Positions 14,478 to 30,076 of a stretch of 64,000 bases of DNA are shown here, piece by piece. Numbering within the stretch: position 1 is the stretch's first letter; each line of letters begins with the position of its first letter. Location of the stretch: positions 290,430 to 354,429 of IMG/VR virus record IMGVR_UViG_3300022602_000024. One strand, written 5' to 3'. The notes under the pieces were generated by a model. It was not told where the DNA came from. It ran no database searches and was given only the letters and a program-made list of their open reading frames with translations. Position numbers and translations under genes: made by a program.

Positions 14478-14750
14478 TGTACTAATAAGTTTGAGCACAA
14501 TACATCTGCTTTTCGACTGTGGACCACAATGTGTGTTGGAGCGACCAACAACCACTAACTGAGCAAGCTCAGTATTGTTCATGGAATCTTAAACGTTTTC
14601 GCAGTTTTAAAATCTAATATACCCTCGGGAGTACCCGAATCCGCCTATCCAGCGCACGAGGTATGGGTTGTGAATTGCTTCACTACTGCTACTAAGCCTA
14701 CCACACGTATCAGATAGTCGCCACACTTTGTGCTCAAACTTATTAATACA
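14478..14750 (-). ncRNA. unassigned ~270-nt structured ncRNA
   Basis: 23-bp closing stem (14478-14500/14728-14750), internal hairpins, own sigma70 promoter just upstream. Confidence 0.7.
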
Positions 14751-14755
14751 AGCTG

Positions 14756-14784
14756 ATTATAAGTTATTTACACACAAAAGTCAA
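14756..14784 (-). promoter_or_regulatory. sigma70-type promoter for the ncRNA
   Basis: TTGACT-17nt-TATAAT, with a TAAATA in the spacer. Confidence 0.75.
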
Positions 14785-14801
14785 GGATTTTTTAAAATAA
14801 T

Positions 14802-14889
14802 TGGCGGAAACGGTGAGATTTGAACTCACGGAACTTTTCAAGTCGCTGGTTTTCAAAACCAGAGCCATAGACCACTCGACTACGTTTCC
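14802..14889 (-). tRNA. tRNA-Ser(UGA)
   Basis: Cloverleaf, long variable arm, TGA anticodon, encoded CCA. Confidence 0.95.
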
Positions 14890-14901
14890 AATAAATACTG
14901 C

Positions 14902-15138
14902 ATGATATCCGAAGATTTAGAGTTTGCTTATAGACTTTTGTACACACAGTTGGCCAACAAACCGTATGCGCCTGCGGCATATCATACTAATTCCAGGGAT
15001 TTTGTGCCGGACCCTATACTAACGGATCCAAAGTTCATGCTAGATGAAGATTTGGTGCAACCTCCAGGAATCGAACCTGGTTCAACGGCTCTTCAGACCG
15101 CCGCTATGACCACATCAGCTAAAGTTGCAGATAAATAA
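14902..15138 (+). CDS. possible small late gene overlapping tRNA-Phe on the antisense strand
   Basis: Preceded by TAAATA-4nt-ATG like other late genes; no recognisable homology. Confidence 0.3.
   Translation: MISEDLEFAYRLLYTQLANKPYAPAAYHTNSRDFVPDPILTDPKFMLDEDLVQPPGIEPGSTALQTAAMTTSAKVADK
15053..15128 (-). tRNA. tRNA-Phe(GAA)
   Basis: Cloverleaf, GAA anticodon, CCA. Confidence 0.95.
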
Positions 15139-15159
15139 GTTTAACTTCAAAGGATTAAT

Positions 15160-15906
15160 ATGTCTTCACCAGGAATTACAATCGGACCAGGTATTACAAT
15201 CGGCGGCGGAATAGACATCGGCGGCGGATATAACTCTTACAGCAGTGGCAACGGCAGTTTGCAGTTTTCGAATACCGGAGATGTAAAAATTACCGACAGT
15301 AATAGATTGAGTTTAAGCACAGGAAACAACTGGACCATTGAAGGTTGGTTTTATTTTAATTCTTATTCGAATCAAGACCGCTATTTTGACAAATATAACA
15401 ACAGCAACAACGAATACATATTCTGGGCCGAAACTGCTGGAACACGTTCGTTTGTTACTTATTCAGCGGGTGGCGGAACTCAAAACATGGACTGTGCATT
15501 TAACAATCCTCCACTGAACACTTGGGTTCATTTGGCCTTTGTAAGATCTGGCAGCACATTCAATGTTTATCAAAACGGCACAGTGGTTGGAACTTCTACT
15601 GGAATAGTTGGTTCTGTTAATGTCAATTCTGGATCCGCATTTGAACTGGGATATAGCGGAAGCTATAATGTCAGCAACTTTAGGATAGTGCCCGGGGTCG
15701 CAGTATATACTGGTGCATTTACGCCACCTGCTGCACCTTTAGGTGTCACTCAATCTAGTGGTACTAATATCAGTGCAATCACTTCAGGTCAAACTGCACT
15801 ATTATTGAATACTTATACTGCAACGCCTTTGTTGGATGCATCAGGTTATTATGGTAATGTACCAGTTAATGGCACAATTACCTACTCATCTGCAGCTCCA
15901 TTCTAA
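15160..15906 (+). CDS. LamG/concanavalin A-like domain protein (likely virion-associated)
   Basis: WTIEGWFY, WVHLAFVR, VYQNG, SNFRI. Confidence 0.8.
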   Translation: MSSPGITIGPGITIGGGIDIGGGYNSYSSGNGSLQFSNTGDVKITDSNRLSLSTGNNWTIEGWFYFNSYSNQDRYFDKYNNSNNEYIFWAETAGTRSFVTYSAGGGTQNMDCAFNNPPLNTWVHLAFVRSGSTFNVYQNGTVVGTSTGIVGSVNVNSGSAFELGYSGSYNVSNFRIVPGVAVYTGAFTPPAAPLGVTQSSGTNISAITSGQTALLLNTYTATPLLDASGYYGNVPVNGTITYSSAAPF

Positions 15907-15910
15907 TATT

Positions 15911-15985
15911 TGGTCTGGCCTGCAGGAATCGAACCTACATTCGTAAGGTAGAAGCCTACTGTACTATCCATTGTACTAAAGACAG
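15911..15985 (-). tRNA. tRNA-Arg(UCU)
   Basis: Cloverleaf, TCT anticodon, CCA. Confidence 0.9.
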
Positions 15986-15991
15986 AATGCG

Positions 15992-16078
15992 TGGTGCGGG
16001 ATACCAGATTTGAACTGGTACGCTTTATTAAGCGGCGGGTTTTAAGCCCGCTGGGTCTGCCGATTCCCCCAATCCCGC
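15992..16078 (-). tRNA. tRNA-Leu(UAA)
   Basis: Cloverleaf, long variable arm, TAA anticodon, CCA. Confidence 0.95.
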
Positions 16079-16098
16079 AAAAAATACTTAATTAAAAG

Positions 16099-16172
16099 TG
16101 GTGCCCCACGACAGAATCGAACTGCCATCACAGGATTACAAAACCAGTGTACTACCATTGTACTAGTAGGGC
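16099..16172 (-). tRNA. tRNA-Thr(UGU)
   Basis: Cloverleaf, TGT anticodon, two U-U pairs in the anticodon stem, CCA. Confidence 0.9.
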
Positions 16173-16173
16173 T

Positions 16174-16247
16174 TGGCAGGGGAACTAGGGATCGAACCTA
16201 GAATAGCAGAATCAAAATCTGTTGTGATACCATTTCACTATTCCCCA
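16174..16247 (-). tRNA. tRNA-Gln(UUG)
   Basis: Cloverleaf, TTG anticodon, CCA. Confidence 0.93.
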
Positions 16248-16254
16248 ACTAACC

Positions 16255-28541: not shown

Positions 28542-28678
28542 AGTGTTGCCACTCTGCAGATAGGATCGTGTCCTACCCAGGAGTCTTAGTAACTGGTTAC
28601 CGCCCAGCTTTCATGTATCCTGTCCGCCCGTTCGTGCTTTTTTAAGTGAGCACAGGACCTCGTTCCCTGTAACACTTT
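28539..28678 (-). ncRNA. unassigned multi-hairpin GC-rich RNA
   Basis: CCTGT/ACAGG, CTGG/CCAG, GTAGGA/TCCTAT and CAGAGTG-GCAA-CACTCTG stems. Confidence 0.5.
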
Positions 28679-28682
28679 AGTA

Positions 28683-28844
28683 TTAACGTTTGTGCGTATC
28701 TAACTTTCTAGCCATTTCAGCCAAGGCTCGTAGATGAGCTTCTGCACGTTGTACCTTATCTTCCATCAACTTCATTCTCTGCTCTGGTGTTAAAATCAAA
28801 CCAGGAACAAATTGTTGATGAGTTTGCTTTTGTTCTAACATCAT
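28683..28844 (-). CDS. small helical protein (53 aa, MMLEQKQTHQQFVPG...), first gene after the attenuator; not in ORF track
   Basis: Manual translation; AAGGA RBS. Confidence 0.65.
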   Translation of the reverse strand: MMLEQKQTHQQFVPGLILTPEQRMKLMEDKVQRAEAHLRALAEMARKLDTHKR

Positions 28845-28856
28845 TGCTTCCTTAAA

Positions 28857-28890
28857 GTAAAAAGCCCCGGAGTTTTTAGTTCCAGGGCCT
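28857..28890 (-). terminator. attenuator terminator
   Basis: AGGCCCTGGA-9nt-TCCGGGGCTT followed by a U tract. Confidence 0.75.
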
Positions 28891-28916
28891 TAGTTAATAT
28901 ACTTGTGTGAAATATG

Positions 28917-29039
28917 TTAACTGAGACCCCCAACTGGTTCACGGTCACTATTAATCTGTGCATCAAACATAGACCAATAGGCTGACCCGCCTAAGGCTAG
29001 CGTTTGGGGTTTGCATGAATGATTAATAGTGTGCGTCAT
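28917..29039 (-). CDS. putative attenuation leader peptide (40 aa, all 20 amino acids): MTHTINHSCKPQTLALGGSAYWSMFDAQINSDREPVGGLS
   Basis: Manual translation; starts 9 nt after a sigma70 -10 box; its 3' end overlaps the antiterminator arm. Confidence 0.75.
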   Translation of the reverse strand: MTHTINHSCKPQTLALGGSAYWSMFDAQINSDREPVGGLS

Positions 29040-29048
29040 AATAAATCT

Positions 29049-29077
29049 ATTGTAGTTTATTTATCATTGAGTGTCAA
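29049..29077 (-). promoter_or_regulatory. sigma70-type promoter of the leader
   Basis: TTGACA-17nt-TACAAT, with a TAAATA in the spacer. Confidence 0.8.
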
Positions 29078-29087
29078 TAGTGTTTGG

Positions 29088-29216
29088 TTAAATGACTTCG
29101 TATTCGTCTTTACCGCAACCACATTCGGGACACAAAAAGTCCTCGGCTAGATCTTCCCATTTGCCTTCTAAGATTTCATCGTGGACATGTCCACAAACTA
29201 CGCATACGTGATCCAT
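29088..29216 (-). CDS. rubredoxin (42 aa); not in ORF track
   Basis: MDHVCVVCGHV...WEDLAEDFLCPECGCGK; TAATG coupling to rubrerythrin. Confidence 0.92.
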   Translation of the reverse strand: MDHVCVVCGHVHDEILEGKWEDLAEDFLCPECGCGKDEYEVI

Positions 29217-29665
29217 TATAGTGCCTCCAATTTTGCTTGATATGCTTCAGCATGACGCTTTTCAATTTTGGCCAATGCTGCAAAACGCTTTTCTGCTTTG
29301 GCTAGAATAGCCGCAAATTGTTCTGCGTGCTCTTTGCTTTCGGCGATTTGCTCGGCGGCTTCGTAAGCCGCTGCAGTATTGCCTTCATCTTCAGCTTGTG
29401 CTTTGAATTCAGGATACATTGTAGTGAATTCATAAACTTCGCCTTCAATGGCTTTTTGCAAACATTCAGCAGTACTGGGCTTGCCAATCAGCAATTCTAA
29501 ATGCCCCCAAGCGTGTAACAACTCTTGATTAGCAGTATGCTCAAAATGTTGTGCAATATCTTCGTGACCCTCTTCTCGGGCAATTTTTGCAAAATAACGG
29601 TATTTTGTGTGAGCCTGTGACTCGCCAGCAAATGCCGCTTCTAAGTTTTTAATAGTAATGCTCAT
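29216..29665 (-). CDS. rubrerythrin
   Basis: NLEAAFAGESQA, E..H, EGE.YE...MYP.F, E..H di-iron motifs. Confidence 0.95.
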   Translation of the reverse strand: MSITIKNLEAAFAGESQAHTKYRYFAKIAREEGHEDIAQHFEHTANQELLHAWGHLELLIGKPSTAECLQKAIEGEVYEFTTMYPEFKAQAEDEGNTAAAYEAAEQIAESKEHAEQFAAILAKAEKRFAALAKIEKRHAEAYQAKLEAL

Positions 29666-29716
29666 TGTTTTTCCTTTATTTGATTAAGTATCTCAGTGTT
29701 TCTACTGATATATTTA

Positions 29717-29938
29717 TTATTTTAACGCAGGATCCACGGTTTTGTCAATGGTTTTCAACTCTTCTTCCGTGGCAAATCTACCAGGGGTAGTTGAATGCCA
29801 ACTGCTAAACCATCCCAATGGTTTCCAAAAACGATGTAGAATATTATTGATTAACACAATAAGAACCACTGATACAAGAATTGCTAACCCAGTCAAAATA
29901 CTTCCAGCTAAAATGTTTGCGGCATTATCGATATCCAT
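29717..29938 (-). CDS. small membrane protein; start revised to MDIDN
   Basis: One hydrophobic segment; AAGGA RBS; the longer start overlaps a tRNA. Confidence 0.7.
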   Translation of the reverse strand: MDIDNAANILAGSILTGLAILVSVVLIVLINNILHRFWKPLGWFSSWHSTTPGRFATEEELKTIDKTVDPALK

Positions 29939-29961
29939 TTTGATTCCTTGAAAAAGTTGTT

Positions 29962-30038
29962 TGGTGCGCTGAGAGGGATTTGAACCCACGACCAAGGGAT
30001 TATGAGTCCCCTGCTCTGAACCGCTGAGCTATCAGCGC
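29962..30038 (-). tRNA. tRNA with CAU anticodon, probably Ile2
   Basis: GGGGA-CTCATAA-TCCCT-TGGTC resembles Ile2 tRNAs; paired 1-72; CCA. Confidence 0.85.
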
Positions 30039-30047
30039 AAGTTTTAT

Positions 30048-30076
30048 ATTATACTAGAAGTTGAATACTTTGTCAA
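30048..30076 (-). promoter_or_regulatory. consensus sigma70 promoter
   Basis: TTGACA-17nt-TATAAT just upstream of the tRNA. Confidence 0.8.

Follow-up and report, generated by a model that had tools for sequence, protein, structure and literature searches.

We analysed a stretch of viral DNA of 64,000 nucleotides (nt), hereafter the window, which is the final 64 kb of the 354,429-bp IMG/VR virus record IMGVR_UViG_3300022602_000024 (CheckV completeness 98%). Between positions 14478 and 30076 the window carries 21 tRNA genes on the minus strand, interspersed with structured RNAs, a boxA-like leader, a gene for a polynucleotide-kinase-like protein, a gene for a metallophosphoesterase (PE) and a homologue of rpoZ, encoding the omega subunit of RNA polymerase. 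We suggest, with a probability of about 55%, that this is an early-expressed region of tRNA array and accessory genes in a freshwater jumbo phage encoding a UvsY-like protein, that it consists of several sigma70 transcription units, and that it is neither one operon nor a foreign insert. A preliminary description had joined the same parts, together with an attenuator and a CmoA/CmoB-like gene pair, into one integrated island that senses, replaces, repairs and modifies tRNA and blunts the stringent response. The replacement of tRNAs, the repair genes and the co-occurrence of parts are borne out below; sensing, the link to CmoA/B and the single operon are not.

Phage tRNAs are seen as weapons against tRNA-cleaving immunity, and the expression and upkeep of large arrays have barely been studied. 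The locus and its approximately 100 relatives offer parts that can be tested: the boxA leader, a phage omega, a conserved PE and a tRNA-like RNA.

Near-identical sequence is held by about 20 freshwater or lake metagenome runs (2016-2023). A search of cultured phages at the DNA level gave no close relative. A UvsY-like gene is located at 32549-33001, outside the tRNA region, and the best cultured-phage match of the PE is a Synechococcus phage of the Kyanoviridae (52% identity); on sequence, these two point to a T4-like lineage. The GC content over 14-30 kb is 0.37-0.43, which equals that of the flanks, and the region is thus not marked as a foreign insert.

tRNA genes, boxA leader and structured RNAs

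Promoters were scored against the sigma70 consensus at 12 positions. Within 19 kb, eight promoters scoring at least 11/12 are found on the minus strand versus one on the plus strand. Two are perfect (12/12): one at 30048-30076, 10 nt before a tRNA, and one at 16587-16615, before rpoZ. Because there are at least eight separate promoters, the region comprises at least eight transcription units and is not one operon, which goes against the earlier assumption of co-regulation as one unit.

The tRNA genes are the following, all on the minus strand.

14802-14889 and 15053-15128, minus: tRNA-Ser(UGA) and tRNA-Phe(GAA) (ARAGORN; Rfam 54-58 bits)
15911-16247, minus: tRNA-Arg(UCU), Leu(UAA), Thr(UGU) and Gln(UUG) (ARAGORN, Rfam)
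16266-16323, minus: 5'-truncated tRNA-Met (CAU) pseudogene (Rfam 32.4 bits, model positions 8-63 only)
21098-21175 and 21884-21971, minus: tRNA-Cys and tRNA-Ser(GCU) (ARAGORN)
22616-22936, minus: tRNA-Gly(UCC), Trp, Gly(GCC) and Asn (ARAGORN, Rfam), with an 11/12 promoter directly upstream at 22945-22973
24554-24628, minus: tRNA-Ala(UGC) (ARAGORN, Rfam)
25631-25974, minus: initiator tRNA-fMet, then Pro(UGG), Leu(UAG) and His (ARAGORN, Rfam)
27620-27792, minus: tRNA-Tyr and tRNA-Glu (ARAGORN, Rfam)
27933-28007, minus: tRNA-Asp (ARAGORN, Rfam)
29962-30038, minus: second CAU tRNA, with a G1-C72 pair (ARAGORN, Rfam), 10 nt downstream of the perfect promoter at 30048-30076

As the preliminary description had it, there are 21 co-oriented tRNAs with anticodons for 17 amino acids and an initiator. 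ARAGORN places all of them between 14802 and 30038, and they are every tRNA of the genome; a genome-wide search found no tmRNA. The Rfam model RF00005 supports 21/21, at 46-70 bits and above its gathering score. The tRNA-Trp at 22696-22769 (minus strand) was missed in the Rfam gathering scan of the whole window and scored 46 bits in a shorter stretch, a filter effect and no defect of the tRNA. The 3' CCA is encoded in every one of the 21 genes, and no CCA-adding enzyme was found in the genome. The set has no tRNA for Lys or Val, no Ile(GAU) and no Arg(ACG). Such a near-complete set supports the claim of tRNA replacement.

A C1:A72 mismatch, as in bacterial initiators, marks the tRNA at 25631-25705, whose anticodon stem has two consecutive G-C pairs, not three. 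The CAU tRNA at 29962-30038 may be an elongator tRNA-Met or Ile2-like; its complement matches the Rfam model of the plastid ycf2 leader, which hints weakly at a tRNA-Ile(CAU)-like identity. The acceptor stem of the tRNA-Met pseudogene cannot form; where the pseudogene adjoins the rpoZ cassette, other sequence has taken the place of its 5' acceptor strand. An intact tRNA-Met of a related locus (L047:937-1012), which also precedes a tRNA-Gln there, shares 98.5% identity with it over 69 nt. Since this tRNA is cut off at a cassette junction, a past rearrangement is indicated. Odd anticodon loops were predicted by ARAGORN in two array tRNAs of relatives, with a 4-nt anticodon 'tttt' in L113:4289-4363 and a 2-nt anticodon 'cc' in L115:1070-1139; these tRNAs may be frameshift-suppressor-like or degenerate.

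The GC content at third codon positions (GC3) of the phage is 0.34 and, with plain wobble assumed, the phage tRNAs read 68% of the phage codons. Isoacceptors are present for AGA, TTA, CAA and GAA, for the NNA codon of every family box and probably for ATA; in most U34 family boxes no codon is commoner than NNA. The NNU codons account for 11-37% of family boxes, and their reading needs either an xo5U-type modification of U34 or host tRNAs. The anticodon set matches A/U-ending codons, so codon supply, which had been set aside in the preliminary description, stays compatible. As judged from anticodons and codon counts, the set would fit codon supply as well as the replacement of cleaved tRNAs.

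The boxA leader and the other RNA elements are listed below.

14467-14801, minus: promoter at 14756-14784 (11/12), then structured non-coding RNA (z = -4.27)
27479-27545, minus: conserved hairpin element of approximately 65 nt between tRNA-Tyr and the methyltransferase gene (weak z = -1.6)
27798-27927, minus: tRNA-like RNA of 130 nt, the long form of a 70-nt reduced cloverleaf ending in GCCA
28008-28343, minus: structured RNA of 336 nt between boxA and tRNA-Asp (z = -5.29 and -5.6)
28344-28356, minus: boxA-like TGTTCTTTAAAAA, 25 nt after the -10 element of the promoter at 28382-28410
28382-28410, minus: rrn-type leader promoter (TTGGCA, 17-nt spacer, TACAAT, with TG)
28411-28682, minus: main part of a strongly structured non-coding segment (z = -7.38; tested as 28357-28682, with the 3' end overlapping the promoter at 28382-28410)
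28683-29087, minus: attenuator candidate, with promoter 29049-29077, structured leader, terminator, ribosome-binding site and an open reading frame (ORF) of 53 amino acids (aa) at 28683-28844

The boxA site held up as part of a conserved promoter and boxA module, alignable in seven diverged loci, and the clade motif has a single site in this genome. In 1.14 Mb of related loci, with at most one mismatch allowed, the tRNA strand has 27 sites of the motif versus four on the other, and 23 of the 27 tRNA-strand sites lie behind a promoter of at least 10/12. The related boxA sites typically stand 14-18 nt before the first tRNA, at the head of arrays of up to 27 tRNAs. In a metatranscriptome contig of one relative, tRNA-Glu follows directly on the boxA leader; contigs from public RNA runs cover only tRNAs, the element at 27477-27542 and one boxA-tRNA junction, and as they come from relatives they are not proof of transcription here. 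Neither a boxB nor a boxC was identified beside the leader.

The arrangement resembles the leader of bacterial rrn operons, in which a strong sigma70 promoter is followed within approximately 25 nt by a boxA-like 13-mer and heads a long untranslated stable-RNA operon. As in the rrn leader-trailer helix, the target of RNase III, an RNA domain closed by a long terminal helix lies directly downstream. Unlike the bacterial leader, the one described here drives tRNAs and RNAs outside known families rather than rRNA, and a role of Nus factors is predicted. A conserved boxA leader would explain how long untranslated arrays escape termination by Rho.

Folding was evaluated as z-scores against dinucleotide shuffles, with coding controls at -0.1 to -2.2. 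Four non-coding segments fold far better than their shuffles (z -4.1 to -7.4); together with a covarying tRNA-like RNA they agree with the earlier count of at least five non-tRNA structured RNAs. Three further segments (14890-15052, 16563-16618 and 29666-29961) gave no structure signal. Because an Rfam scan over 14000-31000 at E <= 1 returned tRNAs and chance matches only, the structured RNAs are outside known families.

The tRNA-like RNA at 27798-27927 gave no match in Rfam or ARAGORN. Viral contigs yielded 15 variants of it; the UUCGCAA loop is invariant, and the T-loop is non-canonical in that it does not open with the usual U-U-C. The two forms, short and long, were folded separately, as MAFFT misaligned them when taken together, and compensatory changes were seen in 5/21 pairs of the short form and 12/34 pairs of the long form. 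A covariance model (R1) of this RNA gives matches, and in 11 of 18 loci the RNA is placed 5-6 nt after tRNA-Asp.

The 336-nt RNA is closed by a 23-bp helix, in which 28246-28268 pairs with 28011-28033. Its counterparts in L050 and L038 keep the same architecture despite sequence divergence (z = -3.8 and -5.3). Such helix-closed RNAs of 270-400 nt (28008-28343 here, L050:3043-3316 and L038:1416-1815) are placed between the boxA leader and the first tRNA, and are flanked by direct repeats of the last approximately 10 nt of the leader (TTT[CA]ATATAG), as if inserted into it. One metatranscriptome contig of a relative is without the 540-bp block that spans the helix-closed RNA to the tRNA-like RNA. 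The RNA at 14467-14801 is likewise closed by a helix, of approximately 22 bp (14726-14749 with 14479-14500), and no homologue of it was found in the related loci. The hairpin element at 27479-27545 is 94% identical to a segment of L045 and 74% to one of L091, between tRNAs in both, and appears in contigs of two metatranscriptome runs.

The attenuator remains a candidate. Its terminator, a 7-bp hairpin followed by CUUUUU at 28859-28887, lies between the promoter and the 53-aa ORF, and its pairing is kept by compensatory changes in L032 and L044. The leader (28845-29087) is structured (z = -4.1) and matches no Rfam family.

End-processing enzymes, omega homologue and CmoA-like pair

The proteins that bear on RNA metabolism are encoded as follows.

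16338-16562, minus: RpoZ homologue of 74 aa (omega subunit of RNA polymerase), preceded by a perfect 12/12 sigma70 promoter of its own, with extended -10, at 16587-16615
16619-17218, minus: binuclear metallophosphoesterase PE (phrog_547, E 2.7e-47)
17208-17681, minus: P-loop polynucleotide-kinase-like protein (AAA_33, E 5.5e-20; Walker A GVPGSGKST)
25992-26621, minus: CmoA-like protein, a relative of carboxy-SAM synthase (4gek, E 2.4e-18, residues 31-240; phrog_4752)
26594-27436, minus: 'CmoB-like' protein with a class I S-adenosylmethionine (SAM) methyltransferase fold (TIGR00452, 20 bits versus a cut-off of 275)

The claimed pair of a kinase and a phosphoesterase is present as a Pnkp-type kinase overlapping a metallophosphoesterase. 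The best match of the kinase among solved structures is Pnkp1 (4xrp, E 5.3e-6), and it also matches the kinase domain of Clostridium thermocellum Pnkp (4gp7) and TIGR04075 (E 1.2e-5). These matches place the kinase in the Pnkp clade of P-loop kinases, and a 5'-OH polynucleotide kinase activity is predicted for it. In the PE the motifs DxH, GD, GNHD and GHxH are all intact. Its start is a conserved Met, residue 24 of the longest ORF, and an 11-nt overlap joins the gene to the kinase stop. Homologues of 70-85% identity are found in 196 viral contigs. Kinase and PE are orthologous to those of one relative, L115 (71% and 74% identity).

Over about 80 related phage loci the PE is without exception surrounded by tRNA arrays of its own strand. 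Of the loci flanked by 5 kb or more on each side, 28/28 have the PE inside a tRNA array. These well-flanked loci have a median of 16 tRNAs within 10 kb on either side and a median distance of 64 nt to the nearest tRNA, and all tRNAs are on the strand of the PE. De novo clustering of array neighbours gave a DSP/PTP phosphatase in 35 loci, rpoZ in 25, the kinase in 16, a TadA-like deaminase in 16 and a DUF2828/DUF7788 TROVE-like protein in 14. Unrelated genes recur too (S11 peptidase, MCD-like, RNase H, rubrerythrin, glycosyltransferases), and gene order is shuffled between relatives. Within approximately 4 kb, and near rpoZ, L115 encodes an HD_4 protein (RelA/SpoT-type HD), an Rnl2 ligase, a DSP phosphatase, two small ORFs, the kinase and the PE. 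The DSP phosphatase of this locus weakly matches the phosphatase domain of the 'Swiss army knife' protein (E 5e-4, below cut-off). In L113 an HD_4 protein, Rnl1, rpoZ and DUF2828 stand next to 24 tRNAs. Profile and tblastn searches of the present genome found no Rnl1, Rnl2, RtcB, HD_4, DSP or DUF2828 TROVE-like protein. Array genes of relatives that are absent here include the DSP/PTP-type cysteine phosphatase (e.g. L048:3311-3790) and the DUF2828/DUF7788 TROVE-like protein (e.g. L090:7920-9347).

An RNA ligase elsewhere in the genome was searched for as well, with tblastn queries of the Rnl1 and Rnl2 of relatives, which were negative. The sole ligase found is an ATP-dependent DNA ligase at genome position 191 kb. 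Thus the claim of tRNA repair holds for the Pnkp-clade kinase, the PE and their orthologues in the L115 ligase cluster, and not for an RNA ligase in this phage. A phage without a ligase would need one for a self-sufficient repair pathway, and to credit it with such a pathway would be an over-reading.

Two known systems invite comparison. Phage T4 repairs PrrC-cleaved tRNA-Lys with Pnkp and Rnl1, and the present phage resembles it as a UvsY-encoding, T4-like phage with clustered tRNAs, in having an endonuclease gene inside the tRNA cluster, as is SegB in T4 (PMC2330249), and in having a polynucleotide kinase with a 3'-end phosphatase function, the latter predicted here. The phosphatase is a separate binuclear metallophosphoesterase here and a fused DxDxT domain in T4. 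There are 21 tRNAs here versus 8 in T4, and unlike T4 the present phage has neither Rnl1 nor Rnl2 and no tRNA-Lys, and keeps its repair genes inside the array. The T4 tRNA cluster also holds extra small stable RNAs, to which the non-tRNA RNAs of the region may be likened. With the bacterial Pnkp/Hen1 and Pnkp1-Rnl-Hen1 systems (C. thermocellum; Capnocytophaga Pnkp1, 4xrp) the phage shares the kinase domain and the calcineurin-like superfamily of binuclear metallophosphoesterases. Unlike the bacterial proteins, those of the phage are split and not fused, no ligase domain was detected, and the PE is nearer to phosphodiesterases of the aq_1665/MJ0936 type than to the Pnkp phosphatase domain. The genes examined included no recognisable Hen1; no search was aimed at it.

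The assignment of rpoZ was upheld. The omega homologue scores above the curated cut-offs of PF01192 (33 bits; cut-off 26) and TIGR00690 (26.6 bits; cut-off 23.6) and aligns to residues 9-59 of E. coli omega and to solved omega subunits. There are 74 metagenomic clusters of such homologues, with PF01192 in all of them, and zero matches in 50,697 cultured-phage records. Whole-record searches found rpoZ in 7/16 cases, each time at most about 0.7 kb from a tRNA, and three of three rpoZ-anchored contigs place it at the edge of arrays of 24-30 tRNAs. Among the cases checked, rpoZ was never seen away from arrays. The homologues retain an Arg-x-Thr-like N-terminal motif; in E. coli omega this stretch contributes to ppGpp site 1. 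Since the motif is kept, the homologues give no sign of a ppGpp-blind RNA polymerase. A blunting of the stringent response finds indirect support in two relatives, where HD_4 is near rpoZ, and none in the present genome, which encodes no HD_4 protein.

Of the CmoA/CmoB-like genes, the first is a CmoA relative and the second turned out to be a generic methyltransferase. The CmoA-like protein scores 82 bits over the full length of TIGR00740, below the equivalog cut-off of 193, and is thus a family relative. In a HMMER alignment that is uncertain in this stretch, an Ala is aligned to Arg199 of E. coli CmoA, which reportedly (Kim et al. 2013) binds the carboxylate. The family profile of the 'CmoB-like' protein matches CmoB (4p7c) at E 3.9e-6, and ToxA and PRMTs score equally, over the core only. 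The identity as CmoB of the product of 26594-27436 was rejected, the similarity being limited to the shared SAM-binding core. The two genes are near each other in 8/9 other loci: adjacent or overlapping in five, fused in one and approximately 1.8 kb apart in two. In the fused case (L013:1292-2731) a single 479-aa ORF joins the 'CmoB-like' methyltransferase to the CmoA-like protein, which may be taken as a Rosetta-stone hint of a joint pathway.

The pair resembles E. coli CmoA/CmoB and phage CmoA-CmoX in that a CmoA homologue is paired with a second SAM-fold transferase. The U34 tRNAs of the phage for Ser, Thr, Ala, Pro and Leu-UAG belong to the classes that carry cmo5U in E. coli. Unlike in CmoA/CmoB and in CmoA-CmoX-CmoY, the partner is neither a recognisable CmoB nor the C5-methyltransferase CmoX, and there is no CmoY; neither PF00145 (CmoX) nor PF00733 (CmoY) was found in the genome. 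Unlike E. coli CmoA/CmoB, the phage pair occurs in phages without tRNAs: three larger CmoA-bearing contigs, one of 288 kb and 80% complete, carry no tRNAs, and three complete array-bearing relatives lack CmoA/B. The pair is distributed independently of tRNAs, and the proposed modification of tRNA by CmoA/B was not sustained. In phages, CmoA was shown to supply carboxy-SAM for DNA 5-carboxymethylcytosine via CmoX and CmoY (PMC12783734). Because phage CmoA can feed DNA hypermodification, the pair cannot be assumed to be a tRNA modifier.

Proposed function and rival explanations

We propose the following for the tRNA-array and accessory region. The consensus promoters, present as sequence, would be fired by host RNA polymerase, presumably early in infection. 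The boxA leader of one unit, conserved in motif and placement, probably loads NusB/NusE and would spare the transcripts of tRNAs and structured RNAs from Rho. The 21 CCA-ending tRNAs, with their U34 family-box isoacceptors, would sustain translation if host tRNAs were unsuitable, shut off or cleaved. The kinase and PE would heal RNA ends, converting 5'-OH to 5'-P and 2',3'-cyclic or 3'-phosphate to 3'-OH, a step suggested by the kinase family, the pairing of the genes and their linkage to ligases in relatives. Sealing in this phage would have to come from a host enzyme or from the phage ATP-dependent DNA ligase; alternatively, 3'-end healing of tRNAs may be the whole job of PE and kinase. The omega homologue, by its homology and constant position at arrays, would join the host polymerase core. 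The CmoA-like protein and the methyltransferase may make carboxy-SAM and use it on a target that could be tRNA U34, DNA or something else. The genes for glycosyltransferase, rubrerythrin/rubredoxin, radical SAM and LamG proteins would be passengers in a recombination-prone region.

Several observations weigh against this reading. The boxA-like TGTTCTTTAAAAA agrees with the E. coli rrn boxA at 11/13 positions and thus has two differences. The E. coli boxA pattern, with at most three mismatches, is not enriched in the window (45 sites versus 33.7 +/- 6.2 expected), so only the clade-specific motif is informative. The nearest structures of the PE are aq_1665 (1xm7) and MJ0936, uncharacterised small phosphodiesterases, and not the Pnkp phosphatase domain; with a pLDDT of 64 its AlphaFold model inspires little confidence, and Foldseek repeats the sequence-level result. 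Homologues of the PE in cultured phages, including the Synechococcus phage with 52% identity, are not beside tRNAs, and for this reason the adjacency of PE and tRNAs could be inherited synteny within one clade. The 98%-complete genome encodes no RNA ligase of PF09414, PF09511 or PF01139. Among relatives the occurrence of ligase, kinase and rpoZ is patchy. Lastly, the same neighbourhood houses many unrelated genes, which makes position by itself a poor guide to function.

The patchiness extends to complete genomes. In a comparison of four genomes at least 98% complete, one relative (G002) has rpoZ and no ligase, one (G006) has Rnl2 and no rpoZ, and one (G007) has neither. The co-occurrence of modules expected in the preliminary description is thus found for the PE (28/28) and for rpoZ (7/7 and 3/3 near arrays) and not for CmoA/B, which is independent, and the set as a whole is patchy.

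That the region forms an integrated, co-regulated counter-defence island, which senses an attack on tRNA, replaces, repairs and re-modifies tRNAs and blunts the stringent response via omega, seems unlikely to us. It draws on relatives in which rpoZ adjoins HD_4, RNA ligases, DSP, the kinase, the PE and TROVE-like proteins at the edge of arrays of 24-30 tRNAs, on the tRNA-like RNAs embedded in arrays, and on the known action of phage tRNAs against tRNA nucleases (PMC10264068, PMC11464382). The genome at hand, however, is without a ligase, HD_4, DSP, a TROVE-like protein and a CCA-adding enzyme. No sensor was identified in the region, where one had been assumed, and no tRNA-Lys, the classic target of PrrC/PARIS, is among its tRNAs. 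The independence of CmoA/B from tRNAs, the eight or more promoters and the Arg-x-Thr motif kept in omega speak against it as well, and no PADLOC model was matched.

We are equally doubtful that the region is no more than plain codon supply in a recombination hot spot, where adjacency has no functional meaning and where repeated tRNA sequences and homing endonucleases make the DNA plastic and let other genes gather among the tRNAs. The tRNAs do read the favoured codons AGA, TTA, ATA, CAA, GAA and the family-box NNA; the arrays of relatives have a shuffled gene order and unrelated genes; an endonuclease-like gene stands in the array, for which T4 SegB, a homing endonuclease in a tRNA cluster, is a precedent (PMC2330249); and tRNA-Met is truncated at a cassette junction. 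Set against these are the over-representation of RNA-end processing among recurrent neighbours (kinase, DSP, PE, Rnl1/Rnl2, TROVE-like protein, TadA-like deaminase), the PE, which is far better conserved (approximately 80% identity) than its neighbours and always on the tRNA strand, and rpoZ, which in no case checked lies away from arrays. It is quite improbable that the kinase and PE serve no RNA repair at all, with the PE acting as a protein phosphatase or as a cyclic-nucleotide phosphodiesterase against immune signals, and the kinase as a small-molecule or zeta-like kinase. The homologues of the PE in cultured phages are annotated as serine/threonine phosphatases, generic phosphodiesterases are its nearest neighbours in structure, the kinase has further matches to Zeta_toxin and CPT, and calcineurin-like orthologues of T5 A1 have been proposed to degrade cyclic nucleotides (PMC7824862). 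But the best solved relatives of the kinase are Pnkp1 and the Pnkp kinase domain, PE and kinase are translationally coupled, and their genes in L115 form a cluster with those for the Rnl2 RNA ligase and the DSP phosphatase.

We also speculate, very tentatively, that the arrays of this clade are run as miniature rRNA operons. The boxA leader would recruit Nus factors, omega would remodel the host polymerase, the array RNAs might serve tRNA-targeting enzymes as decoys or substrates, or be off-ribosome aminoacyl carriers, and the PE would be a dedicated enzyme of 3'-end healing or maturation. The array RNAs in question are the tRNA-like RNA with its reduced D-arm and the helix-closed RNAs of 250-340 nt.

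The concept that jumbo phages combine tRNA provisioning with RNA repair is already in print. Iyer et al. 2021 (PMC7824862) described jumbo-phage tRNAs, kinases, phosphoesterases, ligases and TROVE proteins as countering host attack on translation, found calcineurin-like phosphatases in a few jumbo phages and noted HD alarmone phosphodiesterases. There the kinase and phosphatase go with ATP-grasp ligases, whereas the phage described here has healing enzymes without a ligase. Omega has zero mentions in the same paper. Phage tRNAs are an established counter to anticodon nucleases (PMC10264068, PMC11464382). A text search of the literature found no description of boxA leaders on phage tRNA arrays, and no description of phage omega subunits was found in the literature either. 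Arrays led by boxA, an omega embedded in arrays and the covarying tRNA-like RNA appear to be undescribed.

Other genes of the region

Roughly half of the genes in the region have no tie to translation, and two plus-strand genes lie amid the minus-strand region at 15160-15906 and 19998-21119. The interspersed genes without such a tie encode LamG-like and twitch radical SAM proteins (plus strand), glycosyltransferases, a FabK/NMO-like oxidoreductase, an endonuclease-like protein, and rubrerythrin and rubredoxin. PADLOC models run against ten proteins of the region gave no matches. The remaining features are as follows.

17700-19968, minus: two proteins, of 441 aa (GT-A-like N-terminus, methyltransferase-like C-terminus) and 316 aa, with no Pfam, PHROG or NCBIfam matches and Atlas leads only
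21177-21869, minus: 230-aa protein without assigned function, between tRNA-Cys and tRNA-Ser(GCU)
21975-22595, minus: endonuclease-like protein inside the array (phrog_15137 endonuclease, E 1.7e-11; no Pfam match)
29088-29216, minus: rubredoxin, 42 aa (CxxC...CxxC ORF)
29216-29665, minus: rubrerythrin (PF02915, E 5e-16)

The 441-aa and 316-aa proteins were considered as hidden ligases and rejected, as neither has a family match; in the Atlas the former led to a glycosyltransferase/methyltransferase-like fold and the latter to nothing reliable. The NMO-like protein at 24642-25628 was rejected as a dihydrouridine synthase or U34 hydroxylase, being FabK/nitronate-monooxygenase-like. The endonuclease-like protein at 21975-22595 is possibly a homing endonuclease.

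The stop of the rubrerythrin gene overlaps the start of the separate 42-aa rubredoxin ORF. The rubrerythrin/rubredoxin pair recurs beside the tRNA arrays of relatives, with rubrerythrin 68-82% identical in seven loci. Just upstream of the array, 30073-31599 (minus strand) encodes a 508-aa protein that matches phrog_3560 (E 2e-41) and, weakly, a Mut7-C/PIN-like RNase (E 0.0035); it could be an RNA-processing nuclease.

A tblastn search with the radical SAM protein of a relative revealed at least 12 radical SAM paralogues scattered through the present genome (G000), e.g. at 66-73, 103, 124 and 244-267 kb, and at 498-1238 and 19998-21119 of the window. Many glycosyltransferase and methyltransferase genes are likewise spread across the genome. 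The abundance of these three families suggests that the phage may perform extensive modification chemistry on glycans or nucleic acids.

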